64,000 nt of DNA from Bugula neritina. Lineage: Eukaryota > Animalia > Bryozoa. Numbering within the stretch: position 1 is the stretch's first letter; every line of letters starts with the position of its first letter. Location: assembly GCA_964035545.1 (NCBI GenBank), contig OZ037771.1, positions 1,871,628 through 1,935,627 of the forward strand. The letters are read 5' to 3'. Shown here piece after piece: positions 380 to 25,443 of the stretch. Made by a program: the position numbers and the translations under genes. The notes under the pieces are model-generated. The model did not search any database. It was not told the DNA's origin and saw only the letters and a list, made by a program, of their open reading frames with translations.

Positions 380-784
380 ATGAGAACTCCACCTAGACAG
401 AGAGCAGACAACTCTTGTCCCTGTATCAAGCAGAAAATAAAAGATCAAAGGCAAACAATATTGGATATTGGCTCAGAGAGAATACATAAACTAAATGCTA
501 AAGACAGAAATCTCCATAAAAGGCTGGTAGTACTCAAAGCCCTAAAACTAGTAAACTGTCTGCCAGCAAAAACTTTTCAAAAGCAACTGTTGGCTGTTTG
601 CCTGGAGGTGGGGGTGTGCTTGCACACTGGCAGAAACCCCCCTCTACCAGAAATCAGAAGAGCACCAGCTATTGAGACTAATACTACTGCAGCTGAAGAA
701 CCAGCTTTAGATATATTTGTTGATGATGACACAGTAGCTTCTGTCCTTGAAGACCTTGATGAGTTCTCAGAAAGCTATGAGTGA
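380..784 (+). CDS. SERTA-domain-like protein, type A copy 1 (134 aa)
   Basis: Intact ORF with a splice acceptor (ttttttacag) just before the ATG. QRQTILDIGSERIHKLNAKDRNLHKRLVVLKALKLV matches SERTA spacing without gaps, by eye. It has CxC and CxH motifs and an acidic C-terminus, and is conserved in 3 copies. Confidence 0.8.
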   Translation: MRTPPRQRADNSCPCIKQKIKDQRQTILDIGSERIHKLNAKDRNLHKRLVVLKALKLVNCLPAKTFQKQLLAVCLEVGVCLHTGRNPPLPEIRRAPAIETNTTAAEEPALDIFVDDDTVASVLEDLDEFSESYE

Positions 785-1079
785 TAGTTGACTATCTTAA
801 TCAGATAAAGGAAATGTGCTCTCCTGCACATATAATATGATACAATAGATTTATACTTAATTATTATCTCCTCCTGTTCCAACTACAGATGAGCTCTTAT
901 TTATGCTGCTTTTATGTATGACTACATACACTGTGTTTCTTTTACTAATAAATGAATATAAATATTCATATATGTTTTATAAACACTTTATACTTGATGG
1001 GCAGGTGCTTAACTAAAAGAAGCTAATGCTAGTATATATGCAAAACAATTTCACTTATATAACTAATCACTATTTTTTC

Positions 1080-1169
1080 ATATATATAGATGAAGAAACT
1101 GTATCTTCAGTACTGAAAGGTCTTGCAGAGTTTTTTGCAAGGTTGAAGTGCCAGTTTACCATCTTATAG
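1080..1169 (+). pseudogene. Relic duplicate of the type A C-terminal coding segment
   Basis: Translates as IYIDEETVSSVLKGLAEFFARLKCQFTIL, versus the A end IFVDDDTVASVLEDLDEFSESYE**LTIL. Also present at ~7485-7570 and ~21683-21772. Confidence 0.6.
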
Positions 1170-1604
1170 TGTTTCAAATAAATAATAACTTGCACTCTCT
1201 TTTATGTTAATATATTCAGTTATACTAATTACTATTATAGGCTTTAAACCTGTTCATTAGCATTCTAAATGTCTTATTCTACCAGAAATGGGAAATTATA
1301 GCCTGACTGCTAATGATGAGAAAGAAATAGGGACTAAATTTTACAAATGAATTTATTCTCAAAGTGAACAGAGCCATCTGTTAAATACAATTTATATTTC
1401 CCAGCATATAAAAGACTGCAACTCTACATACATATACCAGTTACATAATATATGAATATAATCTTCTCAAAACACAGGAAAAGGACAGAATACATAAAAA
1501 CATTTAGAAAGAAATGGAGAGGGAAGTTGTAGATCAAAGTTTATTTACAGGCGAATGTTGTGAAGAGTTAAATCTTTCTGCATATGTTAGTTCAAGCTGG
1601 TGGC

Positions 1605-2147
1605 TCACTGATTAATTACATAGTCTAACATAGACAGTATGGCTTCATCACTTTCAGGATCATCATGTAAAGGTGTGTGAGTTGTGTCCCCAGCACTGGG
1701 TGTAGAATCACCAGCATTACTTGCATTCCCTGCAGTATTTGGTTGGTTATTAGCATGTCCATTAAGGTCATGACCCTCAAGATAGTTACTGTGCACAGCT
1801 TGACTTCCACTTTGACCCTCTTGTCTTTCTAGCTCTTCATTTTGGCCATCTTGTACTCTACTTCCTTCACCATTGTTTGAAGAATTTGAAGGAAGGACAT
1901 GGGAACACAATCCTTCTTCTGGACACATTTTCAAAAACTGCTTTCTAAAGCGAGATTTGGACAAGAAGTGAATTCTGCAGAGAGTGTTACGAAGAATCAA
2001 TTGTTTTTGCAAGTTTTTATCCTTTGCTTTGAGCTCTTCAAAATTCTCCATTCCTAGTTCAAACCATTGCTTTCGTCTTTTCTCTATCTTCCTCTTGATG
2101 CAAAAACAAGAGCGGTTGCCTCTGTTTCTTCTAATGGTGACTCTCAT
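1605..2147 (-). CDS. SERTA-domain-like protein, type B copy 1 (180 aa)
   Basis: Intact ORF with an acceptor just upstream of the ATG (tttatag|gtaaaaaATG). Core RRKQWFELGMENFEELKAKDKNLQKQLILRNTLCRIH is SERTA-like; CFC and CSH motifs; acidic tail ending DEAILSMLDYVINQ. Confidence 0.8.
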   Translation of the reverse strand: MRVTIRRNRGNRSCFCIKRKIEKRRKQWFELGMENFEELKAKDKNLQKQLILRNTLCRIHFLSKSRFRKQFLKMCPEEGLCSHVLPSNSSNNGEGSRVQDGQNEELERQEGQSGSQAVHSNYLEGHDLNGHANNQPNTAGNASNAGDSTPSAGDTTHTPLHDDPESDEAILSMLDYVINQ

Positions 2148-2201
2148 TTTTTACCTATAAATGAAGACATAATATAAGTTTAAGGTTTTTTACTGCTTTG
2201 A

Positions 2202-2203
<2 letters not shown>

Positions 2204-2273
<70 letters not shown>
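2204..2273. repeat. (GT)n microsatellite, ~35 units, in the inferred 5'-UTR intron of B1
   Basis: Directly visible in the sequence. Confidence 0.98.
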
Positions 2274-2275
<2 letters not shown>

Positions 2276-4733
2276 TAAAAGTGAGAGTGTGAGAAAGTGT
2301 CATAGTTTAAACAGAACCAATTAAATTATAGTGCAATTAAATCATGTATTGGAAGAGTGAAGCCCAGGCTAGCATGGTCAAATTCAAAGTAGGTAGAGAA
2401 AGGTACTCAGCTGGTGTATTTGACTTGTAAAATGAAACTCAACTCTAACTTCAAACATGAGAATATTCTCAATTCAGAATGAAATAATTTTATGAAACAA
2501 TACACTTTTCACTGTTTTGCCAGTAGTCGTTTAAAAAAATCATCATGTTTTGTATTTGGAAAACTTAAACACAAAGACAAGTTTACCATCAATGAATTTT
2601 AAAAAGAGAATTACAATTTTAACTATATTTTTATAGTCAGTGTTTCAAATCTTTCCATAAAAAAACTTGGATAATTCATAGCACTCTTACCTTGTTAGAA
2701 GCACTCACTATATTCAACCAAATATAATGTTTTATATTCAAATTGGGTCCTTTTTACCAACTCTTATTGAGTATTCTCTGTATTTCAGATCTGTTAGACA
2801 GTGGGAACACAACCTGCTTCTACCAAAACATAGATACAATTGATGGTGGTGGTAAATTTCTGATAATCTCTTGGCTTTATTAGTAGTTAAAGCTTTCTAT
2901 TGTATTTACTTGAATAGACTCTTTATAAAATAGCTTTTCCATAATGCAATTTTTTCATCATAATTGTAGCAAATAAAGCTAAAATAAAGTCGGTTTATCC
3001 ATCTTATAATAGTAATGATGTTTTAATTAGATTTTCTCAATTGATAAAAAAAATCCTGCAATAAAACATCTTTTAACTATCCAATATCATTTAAGTTTTT
3101 ATAGTGTTACAAAATGTGCTTTATTATATTTATTTTTATAACCTGTCACATAACCCTTCTCTATAAATTAAGTTACATTATATACAATACAATAGTCTAT
3201 ACATACAACCCATAGTTAACTGGTATGTTTTTTCAATGAAAATGAATACATTATAAATTTGAGAAGTTTATATTTTTGCAAACAAGTAGCCCAACGGTAA
3301 TAATATCTTAACTAAAATTTATGTAATCTAGAAGATTAATTGTGTAAAAACTTGAAGATTTAAAAAAATCCATTTTGTTTTGAATTATAACTCAAAATAG
3401 TATATTGTATATTCCAATATACTATATTATTATTAGATTTATGCAGTAGCTTCAGAAATATATACATGTAATACAGAAGCATAATTTGCACTTGTCTTCT
3501 GCTGTTAAAACACAGAGCTAAATGTATATATCTTTATAATGCACTGCTATGCAATGGAATATTATCTAACCAATGCGCTAGCTTTTAATATTGCACCAAC
3601 TATCAAACTTTGAACAAGTTGTAATTTTAGTCAATGCACAGTTTGTACAAAATATGATTTTCCACACAAAAACTCAAATCAAATTAAATGCATGTTTTAC
3701 GGAAGCTCTAAGAGGTGTAAAACATTTACTACGCATAAAGAAAATTTTTTTAGATTTAAAATGTTTATTTATCCAGAACTATATTGTATTTTGAAGCAAT
3801 AGAAGCTGCTTTAAATTATATAAAACAATCCTATATATTATGTTGTATGCTCTTTGTGCTTAAATATAAAATAATTTCTGATTGGTCTTGCCCTTATCAA
3901 ACTAATAAGATTAACTAACAACTGAAGTTAAAAAGTTTACTTTTTTACTATAAGTAAAAGCTTTGCATGAGAAAGAAATTAAACACTCCAGTTTTGGAGG
4001 TCGTTTGCTCTATGCTTGTAATAATTTTATTATGTTGTTATGCTTTATTTGTAACAAAACTTTAGCTGGTGTCAACTTTTATTAAATACGCTTGCAGAAC
4101 CTTCATTGACCTATTATACCGTTTTATTTGATGATCGGATTATTACCCTAATTATGTAAGATGTTGTAACTTAGTTTATGAAAAGGAAATCAGAATAGAA
4201 TGTCTGCTAGGGTTATGCTGCAAATGCATGACTAGGCCACCATGTTGAATAAATAAAATAGTTGGGGTAGCATTTAATATTTTTTTCGAAAATATATTAA
4301 AATTGATAGTTAATTGTACAGATTTAAATACAACTGGTTTTAATAAATTTAATTGGTGTTTTGCATGTGTTTTACTCCTTGAAAACTGGTATCAAAAGTG
4401 AAATTGTGATTTGTCCTGGGAATGACAGAATATTTGGCTTTCTAGTGCTTTACTGCAAATGTCTACTTTATGCAAAATCATACTTTTAGAAAGTAATATT
4501 ATTCGGTACATTATAGTTAGATTTTCCAAAATTTATTGCAGTTTAAAAGAATTAATTGTAAATGTGTAAATACAATAAATGAAGTAAAAGGAAAATGTGT
4601 CAAGTTACACAATATAATGAGATAAGAACATTTATCAAGACAGCAGGTTAAATTAGTAAAATTATTTACACCAAAATTTAAAACTAGTATTAGTGCTACA
4701 AATATAATTATTTATATCTTGGTAAGTTGTATT

Positions 4734-5351
4734 TTAAAGTGTCTGAAGATATTGTTCCAGGAAGTCTGTAGCTCTCTTACATTCATCATCATTATTGAAA
4801 GCTTGAGGGAACTCATTAGAGCCAACAGAGCTAGGCAAGAGAACATCGTGAGTAAAATTATTACTGTTGTTACTTTCTTCCATCTCTTGTATGATATTAT
4901 GAAGATCTCCCTCTTGGCCATTATCAGTGCAACTCTGTTCACCAGAGTAACCACTGGGGTTCTGTTCTTCAAGATAATTACTAAAGCTCTCCAATTCAAG
5001 GCTAATCTCACTGTTATACTCCATTTGACCTTCCCCTTGATCTTCATTGACTTCACTTTCATCATCACTACTCTGTGCTTCAAAAGATGTGAGCACATGG
5101 GTGCACAACCCTTCTTCTGGGTGCATCTCTAAATATTGCTTTCGAAAATTGGACTTAGACAGCAGCTTTATGTTGTTTCTTGTTCTACGAATTGCCAACT
5201 GTTTTCGTAGGTCTCTCTTCTTTTTCTTCAGCACTTTCAGATTCTCTTTTCCAAGTTTCAGAAGTTGGTTTCTTTTCTCGGCCATTTTGTAGTCAATGCA
5301 AGCACATGCACTGCTACCATCTGCCCAGCTTCTTCTAATAACAACCCTCAT
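4734..5351 (-). CDS. SERTA-domain-like protein, type C copy 1 (205 aa)
   Basis: The ORF-track start at 5378 lies in an intron; the acceptor tttatttcag|atacaact precedes the ATG at 5351 (MRVVIRR, homologous to B MRVTIRR). CAC and CTH motifs; long acidic tail ending DFLEQYLQTL. Confidence 0.8.
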   Translation of the reverse strand: MRVVIRRSWADGSSACACIDYKMAEKRNQLLKLGKENLKVLKKKKRDLRKQLAIRRTRNNIKLLSKSNFRKQYLEMHPEEGLCTHVLTSFEAQSSDDESEVNEDQGEGQMEYNSEISLELESFSNYLEEQNPSGYSGEQSCTDNGQEGDLHNIIQEMEESNNSNNFTHDVLLPSSVGSNEFPQAFNNDDECKRATDFLEQYLQTL

Positions 5352-5687
5352 AGTTGTATCTGAAATAAAAACCCACACATATGATATTTACAGAAATGAC
5401 TACACTGTTTCTGTGCTAAAGAAAAGTTACAAACTGTAATATATGCTACCCTCAGCCAAATAATACACTTTTGTTTAAAAAAATAAAAAAATATTTACTA
5501 TCATAGTCTTACTTTCTTATTTTTATTCAAAATTGTGGAATGAAAGCAAATTTTTCATGCAATAATAAATTTATATTTCACATAAAATATAGTTTTTATG
5601 TAAATAACTTGAATATGTCATAAAAAATTTTGTTCAACTTAAGTAATTATGCATCAATTACTAGATTTTAAAATGAATTAGACGTAC

Positions 5688-6250
5688 CTGTACAGAATTG
5701 GTAGCTGTAGTTGTATAGTAAGATTTTCCAATCAAAAGAGTTTCTTTATCTAACTGATACTGAGGAATGCAAAAATGAAAGCTTCTTGTTGAAACTGAGA
5801 GCACAACTTACTTCTACAAAAGCAAAGTGTAAAATGACTTCAAATAATATGCTGGAACAGCTAAGTAATCATATTTAATAATCCTCAAGGCTTTTCTATT
5901 GTGTGAGAGCTATCTGGTAATTCAAAGTATTTTATAATAAAAAAGAAATACCTTTAGTACACTGTAAAGCCTGTAAAATATAAGCTTGAAGTGTAATTAA
6001 ATGATTGTAAGCTGTAAATTACCTGAATGTAAAGATGAAACTATTGTGTAGATAGCTAAGGGATTAAGTAAGAGTTCTTGGAACTGCTAAAACTTTTAAA
6101 CTGGGCTGTCATTTTCAGACCAGAACTGGTGCCAGCAAGTTGGTAACTCTTATTAGCTCGGCTCATTTAACTGCTACAGTTTCAAGAAGCTCTTTGTGAT
6201 AAACTTACTTATAACTACCAGTGCAGTCACTGAATTTCTGTTTTGTCAAG
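5688..6250. promoter_or_regulatory. Candidate bidirectional promoter and 5'-UTR exons of head-to-head genes C1 and A2
   Basis: Outward-facing splice donors: minus strand cag|gtacgt at 5687 and plus strand aag|gtaggt at 6251. They pair with acceptors before each ATG (5361-5360; 6771-6772). Both donors are conserved in unit 2. Confidence 0.45.
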
Positions 6251-6787
6251 GTAGGTAGAAGTTACCTCAACTTATTTAATATATCCTAAAAAAGTAAAAC
6301 TACACAGAGTTGATGTAAGTATAGTTTATATCAACAGAAATTTTAAAATAATGGAGGAGAATTCTTTTGAAATAAGCTTTTCAACATACGGTAAACATGA
6401 AAGTTGTTGTATTTGTTATTAAACATGTAAATCATTATAGTACTGATTCATAAGCAATATTAAATTTAAATAAAATAAATGTCAATATGGTGGAAAATGC
6501 AAATAATGAAATCTTAACTTGTTGGTGTAAGGCTAGATTTCTGTTTGAGTATGGAAGCCATGTTCGAATTAGTTGATTGTAAAAATTTACTTATATTATA
6601 AACACCTTCATTTCAGTAATTTTTCAGATAGTTTTTCTGAAGTATATATTATTCTGCTTGAGTTTTGACGGATCAATTAACTTTAAATTCTGTTTTAAGA
6701 ATAAGCAAACATGGTATACACATCTGATGGATAAAGGTCACGTGTTTAATTTATTGTACTCTATTTTTACAGATATATATTGAAATC

Positions 6788-7177
6788 ATGAGAACACCAC
6801 CTAGACAGAGAGCAGACAACTCTTGTCCCTGTGTCAAGCAGAAAATAAAAGATAAAAGGCAAGCAATATTGGATATTGGCTCAGAGAGAATACATAAACT
6901 AAATGCTAAAAATAGAAATCTCCATAAAAGGCTGGTAGTACTCAAAGCCCTAAAACTAGTGAACCGTCTGCCAGCAAAAACTTTCCAAAAGCAACTGTTG
7001 GCTGTTTGCCCAGAGGTGGGGGTGTGCTTGCACACTGGCAGGAACCCTCCTCTACCAGAAATCAGAGGAGCACCAGCTATTGAGCCTATTACTGCAGCTG
7101 AAGAGTCAGTTTTAGATATACTTGTTGATGACGACACAGTAGCTTCTGTCCTTGAAGACTTTGATGAGTTCTCATAA
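6788..7177 (+). CDS. SERTA-domain-like protein, type A copy 2 (129 aa, stop 4 codons early)
   Basis: Paralogue of A1. A GAA>TAA change truncates ESYE, and the original agctatgagtga still follows. Confidence 0.75.
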   Translation: MRTPPRQRADNSCPCVKQKIKDKRQAILDIGSERIHKLNAKNRNLHKRLVVLKALKLVNRLPAKTFQKQLLAVCPEVGVCLHTGRNPPLPEIRGAPAIEPITAAEESVLDILVDDDTVASVLEDFDEFS

Positions 7178-8008
7178 AGCTATGAGTGATAGTTGACTAT
7201 CTTAATCAGATAAAGGAGTTGTGCTCTTCTGTACATATAATATGATACAATAGATTTATACTTGATTATTATCTCCTCCTGTTCCAACTACAGATGAGCT
7301 CTTATTTATGCTGCTTATATGTATGACTACATGCACTGTGTTTCTTTTACTAATAAATGAATATAAATATTCATATATGTTTTATAAACACTTTATACTT
7401 GATGGGCAGGTGCTTAACTAAAAGAAGCTAATGCTAGTATATATGCAAAACAATTTCACTTATATAACTAATTATTATTTTTTCATATACATAGATGAAG
7501 AAACTGTATCTTCAGTACTGAAAGGTCTTGCAGAGTTTTTTGCAAGGTTGAATTGACAGCTTACCATCTTATAGTGTTTCAAATAAGTAATAACTTGCAC
7601 TCTCTTTTATGTTAATATATTCAGTTATACTAATTGTTATTACAGGCTTTAAACATATTCATTAGCATTTTAAATGTCTTGTTCTACCAGAAATGTGAAA
7701 TGATAACCTGACTGCTAATGATAAGAAAGAAAGAGTGACTGAATTTGGCAAATAAGTTTATTCTCAAAGTGAACAGAGCCATCTGTTAAATACAATTTAT
7801 ATTTTTCAGCATATAAAAGACTACAACTCTACATATATATACCAGTTACATATTATATGAATAGAATCTTCTAAAACACAGGAAAAGGACAGAATACATA
7901 AAAACATTTAGAAAGAAATGGGAAGGGAGTTTGTAAATTAAAGTTTAGTTAGAAGCTAATGTTGTGAAGAGTTGAATCTTTCTGCATATGTTAGCTCAGA
8001 CTGGTGGC

Positions 8009-8551
8009 TCACTGATTAATTAAATAGTCTAACATAGACAGTATGGCTTCATCACTTTCAGGATCATCATGTAAAGGTGTGTGAGTTGTCTCCTTAGCAC
8101 TGGGTGTAGAATAACCAGCATTACTTGCATTCCCTGCAGTATTTGGTTGGTTATTAGCATGTCCATTAAGGTCATGACCTTCAAGATGGTCACTGTGCAC
8201 AACCCGACTTCCACTTTGACTCTCTTGTCTTTCTAGCTCTTCATTTTGGCCATCTTGTACTCTACTTCCTTCACCATTGTTTGAAGAATTTGAAGGAAGG
8301 ACATGGGAACACAATCCTTCTTCTGGACACATTTTCAAAAACTGCTTTCTAAAGCGAGATTTGGACAAGAAGTGAATCCTGCAGAGGGTGTTACGAAGAA
8401 TCAATTGCTTTTGCAAGTTTTTATCTTTTGCTTTGAGCTCTTCAAAATTCTCCACCCCTAGTTCAAACCATTGCTTTCGTCTTTTCTCTATCTTCCTCTT
8501 GATGCAAAAACAAGAGCGATTGCCTCTGTTTCTTCTAATGGTGACTCTCAT
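8009..8551 (-). CDS. SERTA-domain-like protein, type B copy 2 (180 aa)
   Basis: Near-identical paralogue of B1 with an intact ORF. Confidence 0.8.
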   Translation of the reverse strand: MRVTIRRNRGNRSCFCIKRKIEKRRKQWFELGVENFEELKAKDKNLQKQLILRNTLCRIHFLSKSRFRKQFLKMCPEEGLCSHVLPSNSSNNGEGSRVQDGQNEELERQESQSGSRVVHSDHLEGHDLNGHANNQPNTAGNASNAGYSTPSAKETTHTPLHDDPESDEAILSMLDYLINQ

Positions 8552-8605
8552 TTTTTACCTATGAAATAATTTATCATTTAGGTTTGAGGTTTTTTACTGT
8601 TTCGA

Positions 8606-9289
<684 letters not shown>

Positions 9290-11316
9290 ATAGTTTAAAC
9301 AGAACCAATCAAAGTATGGTGCAATTAATTCATGTATTGTGAGAGTGAAACCCTGGCTATCATGGTCAAATTCAAAGTAGGTACAGAAATGTACTCAGCT
9401 TGTGTATGTGGCTTCTAAAAATAAGACTCAACTCTAACTTCAAACATGAAAATATTTTCAATTCAGAATGAAATAATTCTATGAAACAATACACTTTGCA
9501 CTGTTTTGCCAGTAGTCATTTTAAAAAAATCATCTTGCTTTGTATCTGGAAAACTTTAAAACAAAGACAACTTTAACATCAATTAAACTTAAAAAAGAAT
9601 TAAAATTTTACCTATACTTTTATAGTCAGTGTTTTAAATATTTCCATATAAAAACTTGGATAATTTGTAGCACTCTTACCTTGTTAGAAGCACTCACTGT
9701 ATTCAATCAGTTAAAATGTTTTATATTTAAAGGGTGTCCTTTTTACCAATTTTTACTGAGTATTCCCTGTATTTCAGATTTGTTAAAGAGTGGGAACACA
9801 ACCTGCTTCTACCAAAACATAGATACAAATGATGATGGTGGCAAAGTTCTGATAATCTTTTGGCTTTATTAGTAGTTGAAGCTTTCTGTTGTATTTACTT
9901 AAATAGGCTCTTTATAAAATAGCTTTTCCATAATGCAATTTTTCATCATAATTGTAGCAAATGAAGCTAAAATAATATCGGTTTATCCATTTTACAATAA
10001 CCGTGGTCTTTTGATTAAATTTTCTTAATTGATAAAAAAGTATTGTAATAAGACGCCTTTTAACTCCCCAATATTACGTAAGCTTTTATAGTGTTACAAA
10101 ATGTATTTTATTATATTTATTTCCATAATCTGTCATACTCTTCTCGACATTATATGTAATACAATAGTCTATACATACAGCCCATGATATTTGACTTTTA
10201 TGTTTTTGATAAAATTGAATTCATGTTGAATTTGAGAAGTTTGGTAATTTAGTATAACGATAATAATTTCCAAACTAAAATCCAAATGATCTAGGAGATT
10301 ATTTGTGCAAAAACTTGAAAATTTAAAAAAACACCCATTTTGCTTGGCATTATAACTCAAAGTAATATTTCGTATTCCAATATAATTTATTATTAGTATT
10401 ATTATTCCGTGGTGGCTTCAGAAATATATACATGTAATACAGAAACATAATTTGTAATTGGCTGCTGTTACAATATAGAGCTAAATGTATATATCTTTAT
10501 AATGCACTGCTATATAATAGAATATAATCTAACCAATGAGATAGCTTCCAATATTGCACCAACTATAACACTTTGAACAAGTTGTAATCTTAGTCAAAGC
10601 ACAGTATGTACAAAATATAATTTTTCTCACAAAAACTCAAGTCAAATTAAATGCATGTTTTATGGAAGCTCTAAGAGGTGTAAAAACATTTACTGCGCCT
10701 AAAGCAACATTTTTTAAACTAGAAATGCTTATTTATTTAAAGCCATATTATATTTTAAAGTAATAAAAACTGTTTCTATTTATATACAACAATCCTGAAT
10801 TATATTGTATGCTCTTTGTGCTTAAATATAAAATAATTTCTGATTGGTCTTGCCCTTATCAAACTAATAAGATGAACTACCAACTGAAGTTAAACAGTTT
10901 ACTTTCCTACTACAAGTAATAGCTTTGCATAAGCAAGTAATTAAACACTCCAGTTCTAGAGATAACTTGTTTTATATTCGTAATAATTTTTATTATGTTG
11001 TTATGCTTTATTTGTAACAAAAGTTTAGCTGGTGCATATTTTTAATGAGTATAGGCTTGTACACTTGCTTGTATATTATTCAGTATATAATTAGATTTTC
11101 TAAGATTTATTGAAGTTTAAAAGATTTAATTGTAGATGTGTAAATACAATAAATGAAGTAAAAGGAAAATGTGTCAAGTTACACAACATAAAGAGACATA
11201 AACATTTGTCAAGACAGCAGGTTAAATTAGTAAAATTATTTACACCAACATTTAAAACTAGTAATATTGTTATAAATATGCTTGCTTATATCTTGGTAAG
11301 TTGTATTTTAGAGTGT

Positions 11317-11929
11317 CTAAAGATATTGTTCCAGGAAGTCTGTAGCTCTATTACATTCATCTTCATCGGCATTGAAAGGTTGAGGGAACTCATTAGAGCT
11401 AACAGAGCTAGGCAAGAGAACATTGTTAGTAAAATTATCACTGTTGTTACATTCTTCCATCTCTTGTATGATACTATAAGGATCTCCTTCTTGGCCATTA
11501 TCAGTGCAACTCTGTTCACCAGAGTAATCACTGAGGTTCTGTTCTTCAAGATAATTACTAAAGCTCTCCAATTCAGGGCTAATCTCACTGTTATTCTCTA
11601 TTTGACCTTCACCTTGGTCTCCATTGACTTCACTTTCATCATCACTACTCTGTGCTTCAGAGGATGTGAGCACATGGGTGCACAACCCTTCTTCTGGGTG
11701 CATCTCTAAATATTGCTTTCGGAAATTGGACTTAGACAGCAGCTTTATATTGTTTCTTGTTCTACGAATTGCCAACTGTTTTCTTAGGTTTCTTTTCTTT
11801 TTTTTCAACACTTTCAGATTCTCTTTTCCAAGTTTCAGAAGTTGGTTTTCTTTTCTCTGCCATTTTGTAGTCAATGCACGCACATGCACTACTACCATCT
11901 GCCCAGCTTCTTCTAATAACAACCCTCAT
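11317..11929 (-). pseudogene. Type C copy 2, frameshifted
   Basis: An extra T (gttggttttc versus gttggtttc in C1) near 11846-11849 splits the CDS into ORF-track 11762..11956 and 11317..11922. A CAG>TAG change also stops it 3 codons early. The indel is in a homopolymer, so an assembly error is possible. Confidence 0.7.
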
Positions 11930-13396
11930 AGTAGTGTCTGAAATAAAAACCCACACAAATGATATTTACAGAAATGCTTAATACGTTTTTGTGTTAAAGA
12001 AAGTTTACAAACTGTAATATATGCTACCCTCAGCTAAATATTACACTTTTGTTTAAAACAATTAAAAAATATTTACTGCAACATCACTGTTATAAGAAAC
12101 TAAATCATAGTCTTACTTTCTTATTTTTATTCAAAATTGTGGAATGAAAACAAAAATTTCATGCAATGAAAAATTTATATTACACATAAAATATAGTTTT
12201 TATGTAAATAACTTGAACATGTCATAAAAAATTTTGTTTAAATTAGATAATTATACAACAATTCCTAGATTTTGAAATAAATTAGACATACCTGTACAGA
12301 ATTGGTAGCTGTAGTTGTAGTAAGATTTTCCAATCAAATAAGTTTCTTTATCTAACTGATACTGAGGAATGTAAACATTGAGGCTTCTTGTTGAAACTGA
12401 GAGTACAACTTACTTCTACAAAAGCAAAGTGTAAAATGACTTCAAATAAAATGCTGGAACAGCTAAGTAATCATATTGAATAATCCCAAAGCTTTCCTAT
12501 TGTGTGAGAGCTATCTGGTAATTCAAAGTATTTTATAAAACAAGAAATACTTGATAATTGATTAGGTGCACTGTAAAGCCTGTAAAAATAGAAGCTTGAA
12601 GTGTAATTAAATGATTGTAAGCTGTAAATTACAGTTTACAGATGAAACTATTGTGTAGATAGCTAAGAGATTAGGTAAGAGTTCTTGGAACTGCTAAAAC
12701 TTTTAAACTCGGCTGTCATTTTTAGACCAGAACTGGTGCCAGCAAGTTGGTAATTCTTATTAGCTCTACTCACCTAACTGCTACAGTTTCAAGAAACTCA
12801 TTGTGATAAACTTACTTATAACTGCCAGTCTAGTCACTGAATTTCTGTTTTGTCAAGGTAGGTGGAAGTTACCTTAATTTATTTAATATATCTTAAAAAA
12901 GTAAAACTACGCAGAGTTGATATAAGTACATTTTATATCAACAGAAATTTTAAAATAATGGAGGGAATTCTTTTGAAATAAGCTTTTCAACATATTATGG
13001 TAAACATAAAAGTTGTTGTATTTGTTATTAAACATGTAAATCATTATAGTACTGATTCATAAGCAATATTAAATTTAAATAAAATAAATGTCAATATGGT
13101 GGAAAATGCAAATAATGCAATCTTAACTTGTTGGTGTAAGGCTAGATTTCTGTTTGAGTATGGAAGCCATGTTTGAATTAGTAGATTGTAAAAATTTACT
13201 TATATTATAAACACCTTCATTTCAGTAGTTTTTCAGATAGTTTTTCTGAAGTATATATTATTCTGCTTGAGTTTTGACGTCAATTAACTTTAAATTCTGT
13301 TTTAAGAATAAGCAAGCATATAGTATACACATCTGATGGATAAAGGTATCGTGTTTAATTTATTGTACTCTATTTTTACAGATATATATTGAAATC

Positions 13397-13798
13397 ATGA
13401 GAACTCCACCTAGACAGAGAGCAGACAACTCTTGTCCCTGTATCAAGCAGAAAATAAAAGATAAAAGGCAAACAATATTGGATATTGGCTCAGAGAGAAT
13501 ACATAAACTAAATGCTAAAGATAGAAATCTCCATAAAAGGCTGGTAGTACTCAAAGCCCTAAAACTAGTGAACCGTCTGCCAGCAAAAACTTTTCAAAAG
13601 CAACTGTTGGCTGTTTGCCCGGAGGTGGGGGTGTGCTTGCACGCTGGCAGAAACCCCCCTCTACCAGAAATTAGAGAAGCACCAGCTATTGAGCCTATTA
13701 CTGCAGTTGAAGAAGCAGTTTTAGATATATTTATTGATGACGACACAGTAGCTTCTGTCTTTGAAGACCTTGATGAGTTTTCGGAAAGCTATGAGTGA
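13397..13798 (+). CDS. SERTA-domain-like protein, type A copy 3 (133 aa)
   Basis: Intact paralogue of A1 and A2 with the same upstream acceptor. Confidence 0.8.
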   Translation: MRTPPRQRADNSCPCIKQKIKDKRQTILDIGSERIHKLNAKDRNLHKRLVVLKALKLVNRLPAKTFQKQLLAVCPEVGVCLHAGRNPPLPEIREAPAIEPITAVEEAVLDIFIDDDTVASVFEDLDEFSESYE

Positions 13799-13954
13799 TA
13801 GTTGACTATCTTAATCAGATAAAGGAGTTGTGCTCTTCTGTACATATAATATGATACAATAGATTTATACTTGATTGTTGTCTCCTCCTGTTTCAACTAC
13901 AGATGAGCTCTTATGTATGCTGCTTTTATGTATGACTACATACACTGTGTGTCT

Positions 13955-14348
13955 TTTACTAATAAATGAATGTAAACATATTCTATTTAACTAACTTCCA
14001 CAATGTATATATAAATATAACAATTAAATACGGAATTAAAAGTTTAATGAATGCATGACATGTTAATAAAACTATAGCAATGTAATATAAATCTAGAAAT
14101 TTGATATAAATATAACAATGTTTGATTTTTAACACATAGCCCATAGACTTAAAGCTTTTTCAGTCAACTCAGCTTTGCTATGGCCCGAACTATGAAAGCA
14201 CATATTATATACATCAAAGCAACCTAATCCCCTATCAAAGAATAATTATAATTATATAATTTAGCTAAGTTCTAATCACAGTGCCAATTTGACAAAAATA
14301 AACTATTTCTAATATATATCTTATCTATTTTATAAATACTTTATAGTT
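13955..14348 (+). repeat. Left ~390-bp direct repeat flanking TNF-like gene 1
   Basis: Aligns collinearly with 21208-21595. Both contain cgaactatgaaagcacatattatatacat and ctatagcaatgtaatat. Confidence 0.9.
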
Positions 14349-18100: not shown

Positions 18101-20752
18101 CCATATTCAAAAATACACTTACAGTCAGCTATAGACTGTGGTTTCACACACCTTAAATTGAAAATTATAAACATTGGATTTTTGATTGTAAATTCTGATG
18201 ACAATTCAATACAATGAAATTATTGAAAAAAGAAATAAGCTGCAATTAAAACCTGTACACGCAACTATTTTGTTCTTTAAAGCACAATCAAAGGCTTGCA
18301 TTATATATGAAACTTGAATCAACAATCGATTTAATGAATAAATTGCACTCTTGCTGTGAAAGATTGATAAAGTTAAAAACTTGCAAACAATAAATCGAGC
18401 AATATTTGCACGCATTTTTTATGAAATGAAAAATAGAACAGAACTCATTAACTTTTGGAGACAAATTACAGCTGAAATAAAAGCTTTGAAATAAAAGTTG
18501 AATGAATAAAGCTGCAGTGCTAACCAGATTATTATTCTATACACACCACCTTCCTACTATTTCGGCAGATTCATCTCATTGGTTTCCAAACGACCTGTCT
18601 AACTACGATAGATCGGAATATGGAAACAAGTATTTTGAAAGAATTGACAACCAGATATGGTGCCCTGCCCCCAGTAAAAATGGATATGGGCGTTACCAGA
18701 CTACTGGTAAGTACATTAGTACTATCACTGATGTTTTCATTGGTTAAACGTTTTAGGTTTATTTTCTTTTGACGCTCTGTTTAAACCAAATGGTAAAAAA
18801 AATGGGTGTGATGGCACCTTAATGGTGAATATAAAAAACCGGGTGCATTTTTTTGTGCAAAGAAAGTTCACGGACAGGCAGACAAAATGTTGTTAACTTG
18901 TAAGCCAGCTTTGAATCATAATTTCCGTGTGATACTGATCAGGCTACCACCTAACGAAGCCCAATTTTTGTTTCGAATAAAATGAGGCACAAATTTATAA
19001 TTTAATATTGTAATATTTTATAGCTTTTCTTTATAATGTTTTTGTTGCACTTTGCAAACGACTCATTTTTCAAGAAAGAAAATTGCCCTTATTGGCTTCT
19101 TTCCATAGTTAAGCATGACATAACAGCTACTTTTAATATTTTTAAGATGAGCAAAAATTTTCCGGTAAAATAAGGTCTTAAACTAACTTTTTTATTCACC
19201 GATAGACAATATTTTTAGTACCAGGCTCGTTAGATTTACAAATACTCTCAATGAACTTCAGCTGCACATTATTTGAAAACTTCCTTCAAACTTTTTGGAC
19301 AAGCATTTTCATCATATCATAGTTATTGATTAGATATATTTATAATTGCTATCTTTAATACAAAGCAGATACATTTTAAATTTGTTTTTAGAATTTGAAT
19401 TATTTTAAAAAAAATTCAACTAAATTAAATAAAAGAACTGACCTCTAATTATCTGTCACAGGATCACCTTTTTTAAACTTAGCTTAATACTGTTATACCC
19501 TTTTGACAATTTTTTTTTACATATTTGCTTATATTTGTAGTCAAAAATCCCTTTTACGACTACTTTGCAAAAGCTGGGTGGATGAAAAACAATCATCGTT
19601 CTCATGAAAATTACGAGCTGCACAGTGATGGAAAAATCTCAGTGAAGAAAGCCGGGCTGTACATTGTACACGCCAGTGTAAGTTTAATAAAAGCAACGTG
19701 GTAATATTATAACAAAATCAAATGCTACTTCAAACTGTTTAAAAAATATTTTTCTCGCATTTTGAATTATAAGTTATGACTGTTTAATTTTTTTTTAATG
19801 TTTCTCGTTTATCTTTGTTTTATTTCTTAATAAAATTTATAAAGAGCATCAATTAACAAAACTTATGCTGAGCATGCAATCAAAATTATCTACTTTTGTA
19901 GTAAATAACGAAATTTCAATTTTACTTTTTAGATCCATTTCAGCGACCTAACAAAAAGGGATAACCCATACTATGGAGTATACAAGACTGACCGTAATGA
20001 GAATAATACAGCTTTAATTAGTAAATGTGTTGCGACAACGTTTGAAAACCCAGAAGAAGATATACTAGGAGTGTACCCATGTCAAGCTTGGCAGGTGAGT
20101 CATAAGTTGCAAACCACCTGTTTATGCAAATAAAGTAAGAAAATAATAAACAGTTAACTGCTTTCAAATTGCTAAGCTATATTGCTCATTAAATAGCTGC
20201 TTTGTCTGAGTTGTTATACAAGAATAAAAATGTTGATCTAAGTGAAAATATTTATCAATATTATATTTTGTTATAAACTTTGCAAATATCTGTTGAGATA
20301 GGTGGTTTAATTTGGATGTGCTAAAACATACAATCTTTTAAAATTTAGTAAAACAGCACTACCCAAACTATTGTACATACGTTTAACTACAAATTGTAAT
20401 ATTTAATTTTTTAGAATTTAATTTTGTTTTCTGTTGTTGTACTATATATAAAGACAGCAAACCTCAATCTAATTTTTCAACATTACATATTATACAAAGA
20501 GCTGAATGACTAACACATATTGGGAATTCTGAGACAGTTTTAAGCATCTCAGCTGACACTAATGTTTATAAATAATTGAATACTTTCTAATTTAATAGAT
20601 ATTTAATAATGTTTGTTTTAATCTTGTAGCTGGTGCCTCTAGAGCAAGGAGATTTAGTTTACCTGAAAATTTCTGGTTACACCTGGTTTAGAGTTGAGAA
20701 AGAAACCTTCCACCTTGCCCTTATACGCCTTAACAAAGAAAGACTAGAGTAA
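15157..20752 (+). CDS. TNF-superfamily ligand 1 (type II membrane, Eiger/EDA-like), 7 exons, ~342 aa
   Basis: Exons 15157-15453, 17359-17458, 17633-17704, 18569-18706, 19541-19677, 19933-20094, 20630-20752; all GT-AG and in phase. TM segment, coiled coil, furin site RIKR, TNF motifs GKISVKKAGLYIVHASIHF, SKC...YPC and LEQGDLVYLKI. The start ATG is uncertain (downstream in-frame ATGs exist). Confidence 0.88.
16578..16587 (+). promoter_or_regulatory. NF-kB consensus site (GGGACTTCCC) in intron 1 of TNF-like gene 1
   Basis: Matches GGGRNNYYCC; a partial GGGGAATTTT lies at 16535. Function is untested. Confidence 0.35.
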
Positions 20753-21207
20753 AGTTGTAGTAGAACTGACCCAGCAATCAGACTAGCAACCAGCCTAGCA
20801 ACAAGCAGAGCACCCTTTAAAAGTTAGAAAGCATGTCTAAGCATATTTTTTAGTTGGTATTTTTTAGCTTTACAAACACAGAAATTTTAAAAAATACGTT
20901 ATTCAAGCTGCTTTTATAAGTTTAAATGTTTAAGTTGCATATCTAACCTTTTTGAGTGTACATTTTAGTAGAGTGAGACAGTTGTTTAATCTTTGCTAAT
21001 ACATGTAAAATTTCTTTTTTTAATATTTTTGCTCTAAAATAATTTTGTTTCATAGACTTATATGTTTGTATATAACCATGCATACAACTTTTTCTATAAT
21101 TTGATAGTATTTGATATTTTATTGGAAATCCCGGTACATAAAACTACATATTTTATATAATATACTATCTCACTATATTTTTAATTATATATAAATATAT
21201 AAATGAT

Positions 21208-21595
21208 TTACTAGTAAATGAATGTAAATATATTCTATTTGACTAACTTTCACAATGTCTGTACAATCATAACAATCAGAAACACTAATGAAAATTTAAT
21301 GAATGAATCAGAAATTATTAAAACTATAGCAATGTAATATGAATCTAACAATCTGATATAAATATAACAATATTTGAATTTTAAAATATATTCCATAGAC
21401 TTGAAGCTTTTTCGGTCAACTCAGCTTTGGTATGGCTCGAACTATGAAAGCACATATTATATACATTAAAGCAACCTAATTCCTTATCAAAGAATAATTA
21501 TAATTATATAATCTAATCTAATCGCAATGACAATGTGACAAAAATAAGCTATTTAGAGACCTAACTCATATCTGTTTTATAAACACTTTATAGTT
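21208..21595 (+). repeat. Right ~390-bp direct repeat flanking TNF-like gene 1
   Basis: Diverged copy of 13955-14348. It runs directly into the normal A-B spacer seen at ~975 and ~7380. Confidence 0.9.
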
Positions 21596-22207
21596 AATGG
21601 GTATGTGCTTAACAAAGAGAAGCTAACGCTAGTATATATGCAAAACAATTCCACTTAATAAAAATTAAAAACTATTTTTTCATATATATAGATAAAGAAA
21701 CTGTATCTTCAGTACTGAAAGGCCTTGCAGAGTTTTTTTGCAAGGTTGAAGTGCCAGCTTACCATCTTATAGTGTTATAAATAAATAATAACTTTAAAAT
21801 AACTCTTTTATGTTAATATATTCAGTTATAATAACTATTATTATAGGCTTTAAACCTGTACATTAGCATTCTAAATGTCTTATTCTACTAGAAATGTGAA
21901 ATTATAGCCTGATTGCTTATGATAAAAAAAGAGTGACTAAATTAATTTACAAATAAATTTATTCTCAAAATGAACAGAGCCATCTGTTCAATACAATTTA
22001 AATTTTCCAGCATAAAAAAACTACAACTCTACATACATATACCAGTTACATTATATATGAATATAATCTTCTCAAAACACCAGAAAAGGACAGAACACAG
22101 GGAAACATTTAGAAAGAAATGGAAAGGGAACTTGTAGATTAAAGTTTATTTACAGGCTAATGTTGTGAAGAGTTGAATCTTTATGCATGTCAGTTCAGGT
22201 TGATGGC

Positions 22208-22750
22208 TCAAAGGTTATGGAAATAGTCTAATATAGAAGTTATGATTTCATCACTTTCAGGATCATCATCTACAGGTGTGTGAGTTGTCTCCCCAACACT
22301 GGGTGTGGAATCACCAGCAATGCTTGTATTCCCTGCAGTATTTGGTTGGTTATCAACATGTCCATTGAGGTCATGACCTTCAAGATGGTCACTGTGCACA
22401 ACTCGGCTTCTACTTTGACTTTTTAGTCTTTCTAGCTGTTCGGTTCGGCCATTTTGTACTCTACTTCCTTCACTATTGTTTGAAGGATTTGAAGGAAGCA
22501 CATGGGAACACAATCCTTCTTCTGGACACATTTTCAAAAACTGCTTTCTAAATCGAGACTTGGGCAAGAAGTAAATTCTGCAGAGGGTGTTACGAAGAGC
22601 CAATTGCTTTTGCAAGTTTTTATCTTTTGCTTTGAGCTCTTCAAGATTCTCCACTCCTAGTTCAAGCCATTGCTTACGCCTTTTCTCTATCATCTTCTTG
22701 ATGCAAAAACAAGAGCGGTTGCCTCTGTTTCTTCTGATGGTAACCCTCAT
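22208..22750 (-). CDS. SERTA-domain-like protein, type B copy 3 (180 aa)
   Basis: Intact and more diverged B paralogue with the same motifs and acceptor. Confidence 0.8.
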   Translation of the reverse strand: MRVTIRRNRGNRSCFCIKKMIEKRRKQWLELGVENLEELKAKDKNLQKQLALRNTLCRIYFLPKSRFRKQFLKMCPEEGLCSHVLPSNPSNNSEGSRVQNGRTEQLERLKSQSRSRVVHSDHLEGHDLNGHVDNQPNTAGNTSIAGDSTPSVGETTHTPVDDDPESDEIITSILDYFHNL

Positions 22751-24774
22751 TCTTCTACCTATGAAATAATCTATGATTTAAGTTTGAGGTTTATCACTGC
22801 TTCAATCTCCCTCTCTCTGGAAAACTTAAACACAAAGACAACTTTAACATCAATGAATTTTAAAATAGAATTACAATTTTGACTATGTACTTTTATAGTC
22901 GGTGTTTTAAATCTTTCCATATAAAAACTTGGATAATTTATAGCACCCTTACCTTGTTAGAAGCACTCACTGTATTCAATCAGTTATAATGTTTTATATT
23001 TAAATTGAGTCCTATTTACCAACTTTTATTGAGTATTCTCGGTATTTCAGATCTGTTAGACAGTGGGAACACAACCTGCTTCTACCAAAACGTAAATACA
23101 AATGATCATGGTGGCAAAGTTCTGATAATCTTTTGGCTTTATTAGTAGTTAAAGCTTTCTGTTGTATTTACTTGAATAGACTCTTAATGAAATAGCTTTT
23201 CCATAATGCAATTTATTATCATAATTGTAGCAAAAAAAGCTAATAGAATCCTGGTTTATTCATTTTATAAGAATAATGGTGCTTTAATTAAATTCTCTTA
23301 ATTAATAGAAAAATGCTATAATTATAAGACATTCTCTAACTATTCAATATTATTTATGCTTTTATAATGTTACAAAATGTATATTGTTATTAATTATATA
23401 TTTTGATAACCCGTTAAACTTGTCTTTAAATTCAGTTACATTATATGTAATACAATAGTCTATACATAAAGCCCATATTTGACTTTTTTGTTTTTGATTA
23501 AGTTGAATTCATGTTGAATTTGAGAAGTTTGGTAATTTAGTAACGATAATAATGTCTAAAATAAAATCCACATGATCTGGAAGATTATTTGTGTAAAAAC
23601 TTGAAGATTTAAAAAAACACCCATTTTGCTTGACATTATAACTCAAAGTAATATTGCATATTCCAATATACTTCAACATTATTTTGCAGTAGCTTCAGAA
23701 ATATATACATGTAATACAGAAACATAATTTGCAATTGTCTTCTGCTGTTACTTAACATAGAGCTAAATGTATATATCTTTATAATGCACTGCTATGCAAT
23801 AGAATATAATCTAACAAATGAGCTAGCTTTTAATATTGCACCAACTATCAAACTTTGAACGAGTTTTAATCTCTAAGATAATTACTCAAAGCATCGTTGT
23901 ATAAAATCTAATTTTCCACGCAAAAACCCAGGTCAAGTTAAATGCATGTTTTATACTCGTAGAAGTTTGGAGAGGTGTAAAGACATCCAATGCACGCAAA
24001 GCAACTTTTTTTCAATTTGAAATGCTTATTTATCCAAAACTACATAGTATTTTAAAAAGTTGGTGAACAGACACTGAAGTAATAGAAGCTGCTTTTAATT
24101 ATGTACAACAATCCTATATATTATGTTGTATGCTCTTTGTGCTTAATTATAAAACAATTTCTGATTGATCTTGCCCTTATCAAACTAATAAGTTGAACTA
24201 ACAACTAAAGTTAAAAAATTTACTTTCCTACTATAAGTGAAAGCTTTGCATAAGCAATAATTGAACACTCCAGTTCTGAGGATTATTTGTTCTATATTTG
24301 TAGTAATTTTATTACGTGATTATGTAACAAAAGTTTAACTGATTGCTTTCATACCATTTCATGCAATAATCAGATTATTACAAATTACCCAAATTATTTA
24401 AGATGTGGTAATCTAGTTTATGAAATAGAAATCAGAATAGAATGCCTGCTTATAGGGTTATGCTGCAAATGCATGACTAGGCCACCATATTGAATAAATG
24501 AAATAATTGTGGTAGCATTTAATTTTATCTTCTAAAATACATTGAAATTGATAGTTGATTGTACAGATTTAAATACAATAAATAAAACAAAAAGAAAGAT
24601 GTGTAGCATTACATCACATAAGGAGACAAGAAATATACAGAGTGTGTTAGTAAGTAAGTTGAACCTGTTAGAGAAATTTGAAGAGTATCTACCATAAAAA
24701 CTGGTGAAGTCTGTAAAATAAATTTAAAAAGTCTAGTTGCATAGAGCGTTTATATTATATTGGTAAGTTGTATC

Positions 24775-25443
24775 TCAAAGTGTCTGAAGATATTGTTCTA
24801 AGAATTCTGCAGCTCTATTACATTCATATTCATCATCATTGAAAGCTTGAGGGAACTCATTAAAACTATCAGAACTTGCCAAGATAAAATCATGGGTAAA
24901 ATTATCGCTGTTGTTACTTTCCTCCATCTCCTCTCCATCTCCAGATTTATTTTTTACCTGGTCATTATCAGTGTAGCTCTGTCCACCAAAACAAGCATTG
25001 AAGTCCTGTTCGAGATAACTAAGAAAGCTCTCTGCATCAGGGCTAATCTCACTGCTATAGTCATCAAAATCTTCCGCAAAGTTCTCATCATCAGAATCTT
25101 CACTACTGTCTTCATCAAACTCCATGCTATCTTCGCTTTCATCTTCAGAAACTGAGCTCTCTTCTCCACTATCTGAGGAAGCCGATGGGGGTACATGGGG
25201 ACATAATCCCTCTTCTGGCCACATTTCTAAAAATTGCTTTCTAAACTGAGATTTAGACAAGCAATGAATTCCGTTGAGGGTGTTCCACAGAATTACTTGT
25301 TTCTGCATATTTCTATCCTTTCCTGTTAGTTCTTCCAGATTTTCTTGTCCCATTTCTAACCATTGTTTTCGCCTTTTTTTTATTTTTCTTTTGATGCAAA
25401 AACAAGGATTGTTTCCTCTATTTCTTTGAGTGGTAATGCTCAT
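24775..25443 (-). CDS. SERTA-domain-like protein, type D (B-like N-terminus, C-like tail; 222 aa)
   Basis: Acceptor tattttatag|gcacaaat precedes the ATG at 25443. N-terminus RNRGNNPCFCIKRKIKKRRKQW resembles B; the tail ending EFLEQYLQTL resembles C. Confidence 0.8.
   Translation of the reverse strand: MSITTQRNRGNNPCFCIKRKIKKRRKQWLEMGQENLEELTGKDRNMQKQVILWNTLNGIHCLSKSQFRKQFLEMWPEEGLCPHVPPSASSDSGEESSVSEDESEDSMEFDEDSSEDSDDENFAEDFDDYSSEISPDAESFLSYLEQDFNACFGGQSYTDNDQVKNKSGDGEEMEESNNSDNFTHDFILASSDSFNEFPQAFNDDEYECNRAAEFLEQYLQTL

Follow-up and report, generated by a model that had tools for sequence, protein, structure and literature searches.

A tandem array of SERTA-derived genes with a putative Cys/His zinc site in the bryozoan Bugula neritina

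Introduction

The SERTA domain (PF06031) is found in SERTAD1-4, CDCA4 and Drosophila Taranis, and its proposed superfamily includes the N-terminal domain of IER2/IER5 (IER5-N50), a hairpin that binds PP2A/B55alpha (bioRxiv 10.1101/2023.08.29.555174). B55 is also bound by SERTA domains of widely separated species (PMC11446282), and the recognition of SERTA/IER hairpins as a general PP2A-B55 docking module is recent. Helix 1 of the hairpin follows the consensus [I/L]-hydrophobic-x-hydrophobic-S-hydrophobic-x-K-hydrophobic, the Ser and Lys of which are invariant among 19 canonical SERTA proteins. In IER5, each of the exchanges S14A and K17E abolishes co-immunoprecipitation of B55.

Here, we describe an array of divergent SERTA-like genes in a window of 64,000 nucleotides, the whole stretch of Bugula neritina DNA that was analysed (contig OZ037771.1). 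An initial annotation of this window had proposed a tandemly expanded SERTA-like family with an invariant zinc clasp, acting as transcriptional co-regulators or PP2A adaptors.

Results

The region from 380 to 25443 of the window contains nine related, intronless ORFs of four subtypes (A to D), eight of which are intact and one frameshifted; a tblastn search of the window revealed no copy beyond these nine. Subtype A is encoded on the forward strand by three intact genes at 380..784 (copy 1, 134 aa), 6788..7177 (copy 2, 129 aa) and 13397..13798 (copy 3, 133 aa), with the C-terminal end of copy 2 being 4-5 residues short of the other A copies. All remaining genes are located on the reverse strand. 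Subtype B comprises three intact copies of 180 aa each at 1605..2147 (copy 1), 8009..8551 (copy 2) and 22208..22750 (copy 3), and the only subtype D gene (24775..25443), likewise intact and with its ATG at 25443, encodes 222 aa. Subtype C copy 1 (4734..5351) encodes an intact protein of 205 aa from the ATG at 5351; the listed ORF extends to 5378 via an upstream GTG. Subtype C copy 2 (11311..11929) is a probable pseudogene, in which a frameshift between 11849 and 11865 puts the CxC motif in another frame than the remainder, and a stop occurs three codons ahead of the usual end. DNA contigs of run X1 display no indel where they cover this copy. Since these contigs probably stem from the same sample as the source sequence, they lend no independent support with regard to the frameshift.

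The order of the genes reflects a tandem segmental duplication, which spans 303..13995 (unstranded; repeat families D1-D15). The duplicated unit [A+,B-,C-], about 6.4-6.6 kb in length, is found three times, and its copies are 89-98% identical. The third unit is broken off after the A gene, and the B gene at 22208 resumes it. The array continues upstream of the window, where two degenerate A-like copies are situated, and three further copies on another contig bring the total to about 20. The repeated three-gene unit, in combination with 21 genomic matches to the family in two clusters, bears out the tandem expansion that had been proposed.

All eight intact copies of the window share a basic N-terminus, a CxC motif at residues 14 and 16 (subtype B numbering), F(Q/R)KQxL and GxCxH (residues 79-83), followed by a tail that ends in an amphipathic stretch. 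In these copies, the net charge ranges from +8 to +15 in the domain and from -10 to -40 in the tail. The earlier description of nine paralogues in four subtypes with common motifs and acidic tails thus holds, eight of the copies being intact.

The domain is under purifying selection, and the acidic tails evolve faster. Among the B paralogues, dN/dS of the domain amounts to 0.04-0.17, with 0.04 between copies 1 and 2, and cross-species orthologues give 0.11-0.17. The A paralogues yield domain values of 0.28-0.58, which are based on just 4-6 changes of each kind, and A copy 1 gives 0.35-0.63 against the other A copies. For the tails, dN/dS is 0.2-1.3. Orthologues of subtypes B, C and D are present in other Bugula-type data, and the subtype D ortholog of a related species (P0005) displays a dN/dS of 0.22.

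A profile HMM search of 1.84 billion (1.84e9) proteins retrieved members of the family alone, all of them from Bugula-type bryozoans, and no SERTAD, in agreement with the lineage-specific set envisaged at the outset. The protein-level search also suggests that the family is absent from the annotated proteins of Watersipora. No RNA run was found to contain the array stretch. The Logan contigs of SRR4020077/83/84, which encode orthologues, were considered as transcripts on account of a length of 929 nt and an end 13 nt past an AATAAA. As these contigs are collinear with the genomic flanks and a 5 kb single-gene contig occurs in the same runs, they were treated as DNA; no paper citing these runs was found.

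Comparison with the SERTA domain gave different results depending on the method. The Pfam SERTA HMM (gathering score 25 bits) matched none of the nine ORFs at E<=10, and in a six-frame scan of the genome with PF06031 the canonical gene on contig C2 was the only one to score (25.8 bits), with no match in the array. By contrast, 18 of 18 canonical bryozoan SERTA proteins match the Pfam model. BLASTP of the canonical protein (L001:1423-1836) reached E 1e-4 against subtype B and 1e-3 against subtype A, and these alignments are collinear, starting at the first Cys and reaching residue 77. In profile-profile comparison with hhalign, the family profile aligned with the 18 bryozoan SERTA proteins at 90.1% probability (score 42.6, E 1.6e-6, 64 gap-free columns) and with a broader SERTA set at 91.7% probability (E 7.7e-7), the gap-free span across both comparisons being 64-65 columns and both profiles being shallow (Neff about 2-3). 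Column shuffles scored 13.0 ± 2.6 with a maximum of 24.1, so that 0 of 300 reached 42.6, and the reversed profile scored 10.6. The gap-free alignment to SERTA proposed initially is therefore supported at the level of profile-profile comparison and not by the Pfam HMM, and a lack of profile similarity, which had been named as evidence against the assignment, applies to the latter only.

The helices predicted by AF2 for the canonical protein (residues 12-37, 41-60, 63-72 and 75-86) agree with those of the family (15-42, 46-61, 64-74 and 76-79) at an offset of +1. On the basis of ESM features, the top cluster consists to 88% of SERTA proteins (score 0.91, 203 of 256 features in common), and SERTA appears in 26 of 30 matches. 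Moreover, the likeness to the canonical protein extends into flanks that are specific to bryozoans, C..(I/V).KR..EKR.K before the motif and LS.K.F.(R/K)Q.L after it. Within helix 2, subtypes B (KQLILRN) and D (KQVILWN) are close to the consensus [H/K/R]xxL[L/I]x[S/N], and the last Asn is missing from subtypes C (KQLAIRR) and A (KRLVVLK). In conclusion, hhalign scores far above those of shuffled profiles, matching helix boundaries and SERTA clusters as ESM neighbours uphold SERTA descent, and the family most likely derives from the single canonical SERTA-domain gene of bryozoans.

Helix 1 retains the hydrophobic positions of the consensus and neither its Ser nor its Lys. Gly32, invariant in the family, stands in place of the Ser, and the position of the Lys is occupied by Asn35 in subtypes B, C and D or by Arg in subtype A. 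Because both residues are needed by IER5 for B55, it is doubtful whether PP2A-B55 binding has been retained, and the idea of a PP2A-B55 adaptor, raised in the initial annotation, is weakened by these replacements in every member of the family.

B copy 2 serves as numbering reference, with residues 1-84 of the domain encoded by 8300-8551 on the reverse strand and the codons of C14, C16, C81 and H83 located at 8510-8512, 8504-8506, 8309-8311 and 8303-8305, respectively. These four residues are present in all eight intact copies of the window and in the cross-species orthologues. Two exceptions were encountered: L012, a B-like and otherwise apparently intact copy on contig C5, in which an in-frame deletion of 4 residues takes one Cys of the CxC motif, and P0009, an A-type fragment from a different data set, which is devoid of the C and H. 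Hence the invariance claimed for CxC and CxH is valid for the intact copies of the window and does not extend genome-wide. Across subtypes with 25-40% identity, C16, C81 and H83 represent three of ten invariant columns, and the columns of Pro76, Glu77 and Gly79 beside the CxH motif are invariant or nearly so. Residue 75 is variable, being Cys in A and B, His in C and Trp in D. C14, present in 17 of 18 sequences, is by alignment the only ancestral residue of the cluster; C16, C81 and H83, and with them the CxC and CxH motifs as such, are derived.

According to AF2, helix 1 comprises 28 residues and helices 2 and 3 together with their linker 29 residues. Due to this near equality, antiparallel packing would place residues 74/75 beside residues 14-16, and it is these helix lengths that suggest closeness of the putative metal ligands. 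A Pfam scan of the nine ORFs matched no zinc-finger family; DAG_kinase_N, Ribosomal_L22e and others appeared as sub-threshold noise. Among PDB sequences, the family profile hit nothing but eL22 (E 0.2-0.4), which was taken as chance, and the canonical profile one designed protein (E 0.36). Foldseek against the PDB gave nothing at E<=0.001, and a shape search of the ESM-Atlas returned unrelated helical proteins. VIA-align wide yielded generic hairpins throughout (best Z 5.9), including CsoR/CstR (Z 5.6-5.7), which were tied with all others and gave no metal-site evidence. IER5 was not recovered by any sequence or fold search, and nothing relevant was found in the literature on SERTA with bryozoans, or on SERTA with zinc and cysteine.

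Discussion

We favour the reading, at a probability of roughly 0.6, that the array encodes functional, lineage-restricted and tandemly amplified SERTA-derived paralogues, in which a basic three-helix module with a putative zinc site is joined to an acidic tail. A single canonical bryozoan SERTA gene would have been amplified by tandem duplication of the three-gene unit. The N-terminal basic module of about 84 residues would consist of the SERTA helix-loop-helix and the bryozoan-specific third helix 'LS.K.F.(K/R)Q.L', and the fast-evolving tail is probably disordered, with a short amphipathic helix at its end. One zinc ion would most likely be bound by the derived residues C16, C81 and H83, by the ancestral C14 and often by C/H75, thereby connecting the turn that follows helix 3 with the helix-1 N-cap and stiffening the hairpin. 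The basic module may act as docking surface and the tail as effector or partner-recruiting arm of proteins that are presumably expressed and probably nuclear. Since the helix-1 residues needed for B55 are replaced, the proteins have probably acquired a different docking partner or bind B55 in an altered mode. A more specific proposal, that the hairpin was remade as a zinc-stapled module, left PP2A-B55 and was multiplied to about 20 tandem copies with rapidly changing acidic tails as bugulid-specific adaptors for another partner, is put forward tentatively.

A competing reading holds that the canonical role has been kept, with the family acting as PP2A-B55 adaptors or inhibitors or as SERTAD-like transcriptional co-regulators and the Cys/His cluster as a mere additional staple. 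Helix 2 of B and D retains a basic residue followed by L-I-L-x-N-T (V-L-I-R-N-T in canonical proteins), subtype A is still basic at the position of the helix-1 Lys, and binding of B55 by SERTA domains is found across distant species. However, subtypes B, C and D carry Gly and Asn in place of the Ser and Lys that are invariant in the 19 canonical proteins, each of the IER5 exchanges S14A and K17E is sufficient to lose B55, and the helix-2 N-T is missing from subtype A. A retained role is in our view doubtful. Slightly less credit is given to a function of the Cys/His residues other than zinc binding, be it redox sensing, a disulfide, another metal or cofactor, direct contact to a partner, or an intermolecular metal bridge forming a dimer clasp. 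Such a function would be in line with ligand geometry being derived from helix lengths, the tolerated loss of one Cys in L012, the C/H/W variation of residue 75 and the missing match to Pfam zinc-finger models. Nevertheless, two Cys and a Cys-x-His in a basic, presumably intracellular protein are the usual signature of structural zinc, and near-invariant Pro76, Glu77 and Gly79 beside the CxH motif suggest a fixed turn.

Two further explanations would deprive the array of its SERTA ancestry or of its function. That the family is an unrelated orphan, resembling SERTA by convergence of basic helical hairpins, might be argued from the commonness of such hairpins and from the lack of any HMMER-level link to a SERTAD. 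This is improbable given an alignment score about 11 SD over composition-matched shuffles, the same order and boundaries of helices as in the canonical protein, and a likeness that continues past the SERTA motif into the bryozoan-specific flanks. That the array consists of non-functional duplicates in decay is less probable still: one frameshifted copy, two degenerate A-like copies upstream of the window and the lack of RNA evidence are outweighed by eight intact ORFs out of nine, a domain dN/dS of 0.04-0.17 at a synonymous divergence of 0.13-0.29, and the retention of orthologues in other species.

Functional SERTA-derived paralogues of this kind provide a clear example of tandem amplification, within one lineage, of an animal regulator that is normally single-copy. 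As the family alters both key contacts of helix 1 and adds a likely metal staple, its members represent ready-made variants for studying what B55 binding needs and how the fold is re-purposed. Should the proteins bind no zinc, or the genes not be transcribed, the array would merely be a fast-evolving lineage-specific family of modest interest.

The closest relatives are the SERTA proteins themselves, which in bryozoans (L001:1423-1836, P0010-P0029) are single-copy. They share with the family small single-exon genes whose products carry a third helix after the basic helix-loop-helix and have an acidic C-terminal region, the 64-65 gap-free columns including helix 2 (L..[LV][IL][IL].NT) and the bryozoan-specific flanks, as well as the first Cys, C14. 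In contrast, the family has no Pfam match, has exchanged the helix-1 Ser/Lys for Gly and Asn/Arg, has gained C16, C81, H83 and C/H75, and comprises about 20 tandem copies confined to Bugula-type bryozoans. Moreover, its C-terminal motif differs from the conserved ..RQLVAVS at the end of the canonical protein. With IER5, whose function requires a nuclear localisation sequence, the family has the hairpin of the proposed superfamily and its basic character in common; the equivalents of S14 and K17 are lost in the family, and IER5 possesses neither the Cys/His cluster nor the third helix. CD4 or CD8alpha (CxC) and Lck (CxxC) form an intermolecular 'zinc clasp' of four Cys ligands, which joins two different proteins. 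The motifs of the family, which bears no sequence relation to this clasp, are located in one chain and one of their ligands is His; the similarity, as far as zinc is putative in the family, lies in the combination of CxC with a second two-ligand motif holding helices.

Organisation of the gene array

Nine related single-exon ORFs occupy positions 380–25443 of the window, which has a G+C content of about 30%, contains long (TG)n tracts and belongs to an animal genome of 216 Mb (G000:C7:1871628-1935627). The three A genes (starts at 380, 6788 and 13397) lie on the plus strand and encode 129–134 amino acids. All other copies are on the minus strand: three of subtype B (1605–2147, 8009–8551 and 22208–22750; 180 amino acids), two of subtype C (4734–5351 and 11311–11929; 205 amino acids) and one of subtype D (24775–25443; 222 amino acids). 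Protein matches, 77–83% identical, are the Bugula neritina hypothetical proteins EB796_000177, EB796_006500 and EB796_006498, which indicates a related bugulid as the source, and tblastn with every subtype as query found no additional copies in the 64 kb window. The array is built from an [A+,B−,C−] unit of about 6.4–6.6 kb, repeated three times with 89–98% identity between units; in the third, the A gene is followed by an interruption of about 7.6 kb, and B and D close the unit. The longer spacing of some repeat families (about 6.99 kb versus 6.40 kb) is explained by a (TG)n microsatellite, roughly 700 bp long, at 8578–9342, just downstream (plus strand) of B copy 2. Long ORFs at 4712–5132 and 11110–11709, which overlap the C-type genes or run antisense to them, arise from AT-rich, stop-poor opposite frames and are not separate genes. 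The insert itself (13955–21595) is flanked by 300-nt direct repeats (13955–14254 and 21207–21506, 86% identical) and contains a type-II membrane-anchor ORF (15112–15531) as well as short ORFs (18502–18747 and 19525–19704) resembling strands of the TNF-homology domain; judged by their sequences, these ORFs look like a multi-exon TNF-ligand gene.

A profile search of the whole genome yielded 21 matches to the 90-residue family domain. On contig C7 the array spans 1850510–1897070, which places its start some 21 kb upstream of the window; three more copies are located on contig C5 near 9.01 Mb. In the upstream units, two degenerate A-like copies, L025 (G000:C7:1854396-1854620) and L024 (1868961–1869179), lie between B and C and have no counterpart in the units of the window; CFC and GVCLH are retained in both, but helix 2 is largely missing and there is no in-frame ATG. 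Within the window, C copy 2 is broken, with its first 27 codons, CxC included, out of frame with the remainder and a premature stop three codons early. The DNA contigs of the sole public run holding the region show no indel in this copy over the stretch covered, but give no independent support since the run probably represents the source sample.

Selection and subtype history

Among the B paralogues, dN/dS is 0.04–0.17 in the domain (at dS 0.13–0.27) and 0.8–1.3 in the tails; the A paralogues give 0.28–0.58, based on few changes. Comparison with cross-species orthologues yields 0.22 for D (domain 0.17, tail 0.23; flanks 85% identical) and, for the B-like gene on contig C5, 0.11 in the domain and 0.59 in the tail. 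No RNA run holding the region was found among the public runs, and orthologue-encoding Logan contigs were rejected as transcripts because they behave as genomic DNA. The family members are very probably functional genes.

In a phylogenetic tree, every family copy falls into one clade relative to the canonical SERTA proteins; within it, A, C and D each form a supported group, and the B copies are unresolved at its base. Since B-, C- and D-type sequences of other Bugula-type data sets group with their own subtype, the subtypes are older than the species split. The B. neritina protein P0008 joins a body of type C to a terminus of type B, a mosaic suggesting that paralogues have exchanged sequence.

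Probable descent from SERTA

The SERTA assignment of the initial annotation failed at the level of HMMER: the Pfam SERTA HMM (PF06031) matched none of the nine copies at E≤10. When all six frames of the genome were scanned with this HMM, just one gene exceeded the cut-off, a single-exon ORF of 137 amino acids on contig C2 (L001:1423-1836, 25.8 bits), representing the bryozoan canonical SERTA protein. Orthologues of this protein, each matching Pfam SERTA at around 1e-5, are present in no fewer than 18 further data sets, that of Watersipora subatra among them. When 1.84 billion representative proteins were searched exhaustively with a profile HMM of the family, the three sequences recovered all proved to be family members, and no link to SERTADs emerges at the sensitivity of HMMER; on the evidence of public data, the family is therefore confined to Bugula-type bryozoans.

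Profile comparison nevertheless connects the family to the canonical protein. In single, collinear BLASTP comparisons the latter matches B with E 1e-4 and A with 1e-3. When the family profile was aligned by hhalign to 18 canonical proteins, the probability was 90.1% (E 1.6e-6, score 42.6); with a broader set including more distant SERTA proteins it was 91.7%. Both profiles are shallow. The gap-free alignment initially claimed is borne out over 64 columns; 300 column shuffles of the family alignment, controlling for the Lys/Arg/Glu/Leu-rich composition, scored 13.0 ± 2.6 (maximum 24.1) and the reversed profile 10.6. Convergence on a common helical motif is disfavoured: the match reaches past the 36-residue Pfam motif into sequence specific to bryozoans, with C..(V/I).KR..EKR.K preceding the motif and LS.K.F.(R/K)Q.L following it, and so favours an origin from the bryozoan gene. 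By ESM-Atlas features, the B domain lies closest to SERTA clusters of chordates and arthropods (26 of 30 matches carry SERTA; best score 0.91, 203 of 256 features shared). AlphaFold2 places the family helices at 15–42, 46–61, 64–74 and 76–79 (mean pLDDT 80.9) and those of the canonical protein at 12–37, 41–60, 63–72 and 75–86, so that the boundaries of helices 2, 3 and 4 agree within one residue at an alignment offset of +1. Shape searches (Foldseek against PDB, ESM Atlas and VIA-align wide) gave generic helical hairpins only and are neutral. Taken together, descent from SERTA has a probability of roughly 0.85. Since the family neither matches the Pfam model nor bears the helix-1 signature, it is best regarded as a SERTA-derived variant and not as a canonical member.

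Cysteine/histidine cluster and acidic tail

Only 10 columns are invariant across the subtypes (25–40% identity), among them C16, C81 and H83; Pro76, Glu77 and Gly79, next to CxH, are invariant or nearly so. The initial annotation described CxC and CxH as invariant. Conservation is evident, strict invariance is not, since the B-like copy L012 on contig C5 has lost one Cys of CxC through an in-frame four-residue deletion. In the hhalign register, C14 aligns with a conserved Cys (DPCR) of canonical SERTA, whereas C16, C81, H83 and the Cys or His at position 75 were gained in the family. Helix 1 (28 residues) nearly equals in length the segment formed by helix 2, linker and helix 3 (29 residues); antiparallel packing would set residue 74/75 beside residues 14–16, with CxH a short turn off. 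A zinc site in the domain is predicted with slightly better than even odds. A literature search found no publication that connects SERTA with zinc or reports its expansion in bryozoans. In addition to the N-terminal Cys, the canonical proteins (alignments A4 and A5) possess an invariant Cys where helix 2 begins, C44 (..AEQCLRQ..), which is Asn in the expanded family. P0035, an ENA protein of 127 amino acids found with the canonical profile, carries an N-terminal RING-H2 finger (PF13639) directly joined to a canonical-type SERTA domain and, unless a gene-model artefact, would represent another, independent case of SERTA combined with a zinc module.

The domain has a net charge of +8 to +15 (pI about 10) and the tail of −10 to −40 (pI about 4). 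The acidic tail with an amphipathic end noted initially is confirmed, each subtype having its own terminal stretch; the canonical C-terminus, in contrast, is a conserved ..RQLVAVS. The proteins most likely act as small, probably nuclear adaptors, in which the basic three-helix module would provide a docking surface. A single zinc ion on C14, C16, C81 and H83 most likely makes this module more rigid; in A, B and C, residue 75 would be a spare ligand. The tail, acidic and ending in a helix, would serve as a variable effector or recruiting arm, diversified by tandem duplication and fast tail evolution.

Comparison with PP2A-B55-binding proteins

The published IER/SERTA consensus includes a Ser and a Lys in helix 1. 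In IER5, S14A and K17E each abolish co-immunoprecipitation of B55, K17E also abolishing inhibition, and a triple mutant of the CDCA4 SERTA domain, Lys included, loses PP2A-B55 recruitment (PMC11446282). Among 19 canonical SERTA proteins, most of them from bryozoans, neither residue (S31 and K34) varies. The family, in contrast, has an invariant Gly32 in place of the Ser, and Asn35 (B, C and D) or Arg (A) in place of the Lys. Helix 2 is near the SERTA consensus in B and D, and its Asn-Thr is absent in A. Retention of B55 binding appears doubtful; with the helix-1 Ser and Lys replaced and the helix-2 Asn-Thr lost in A, binding mode or partner is probably altered relative to the IER and SERTA proteins.
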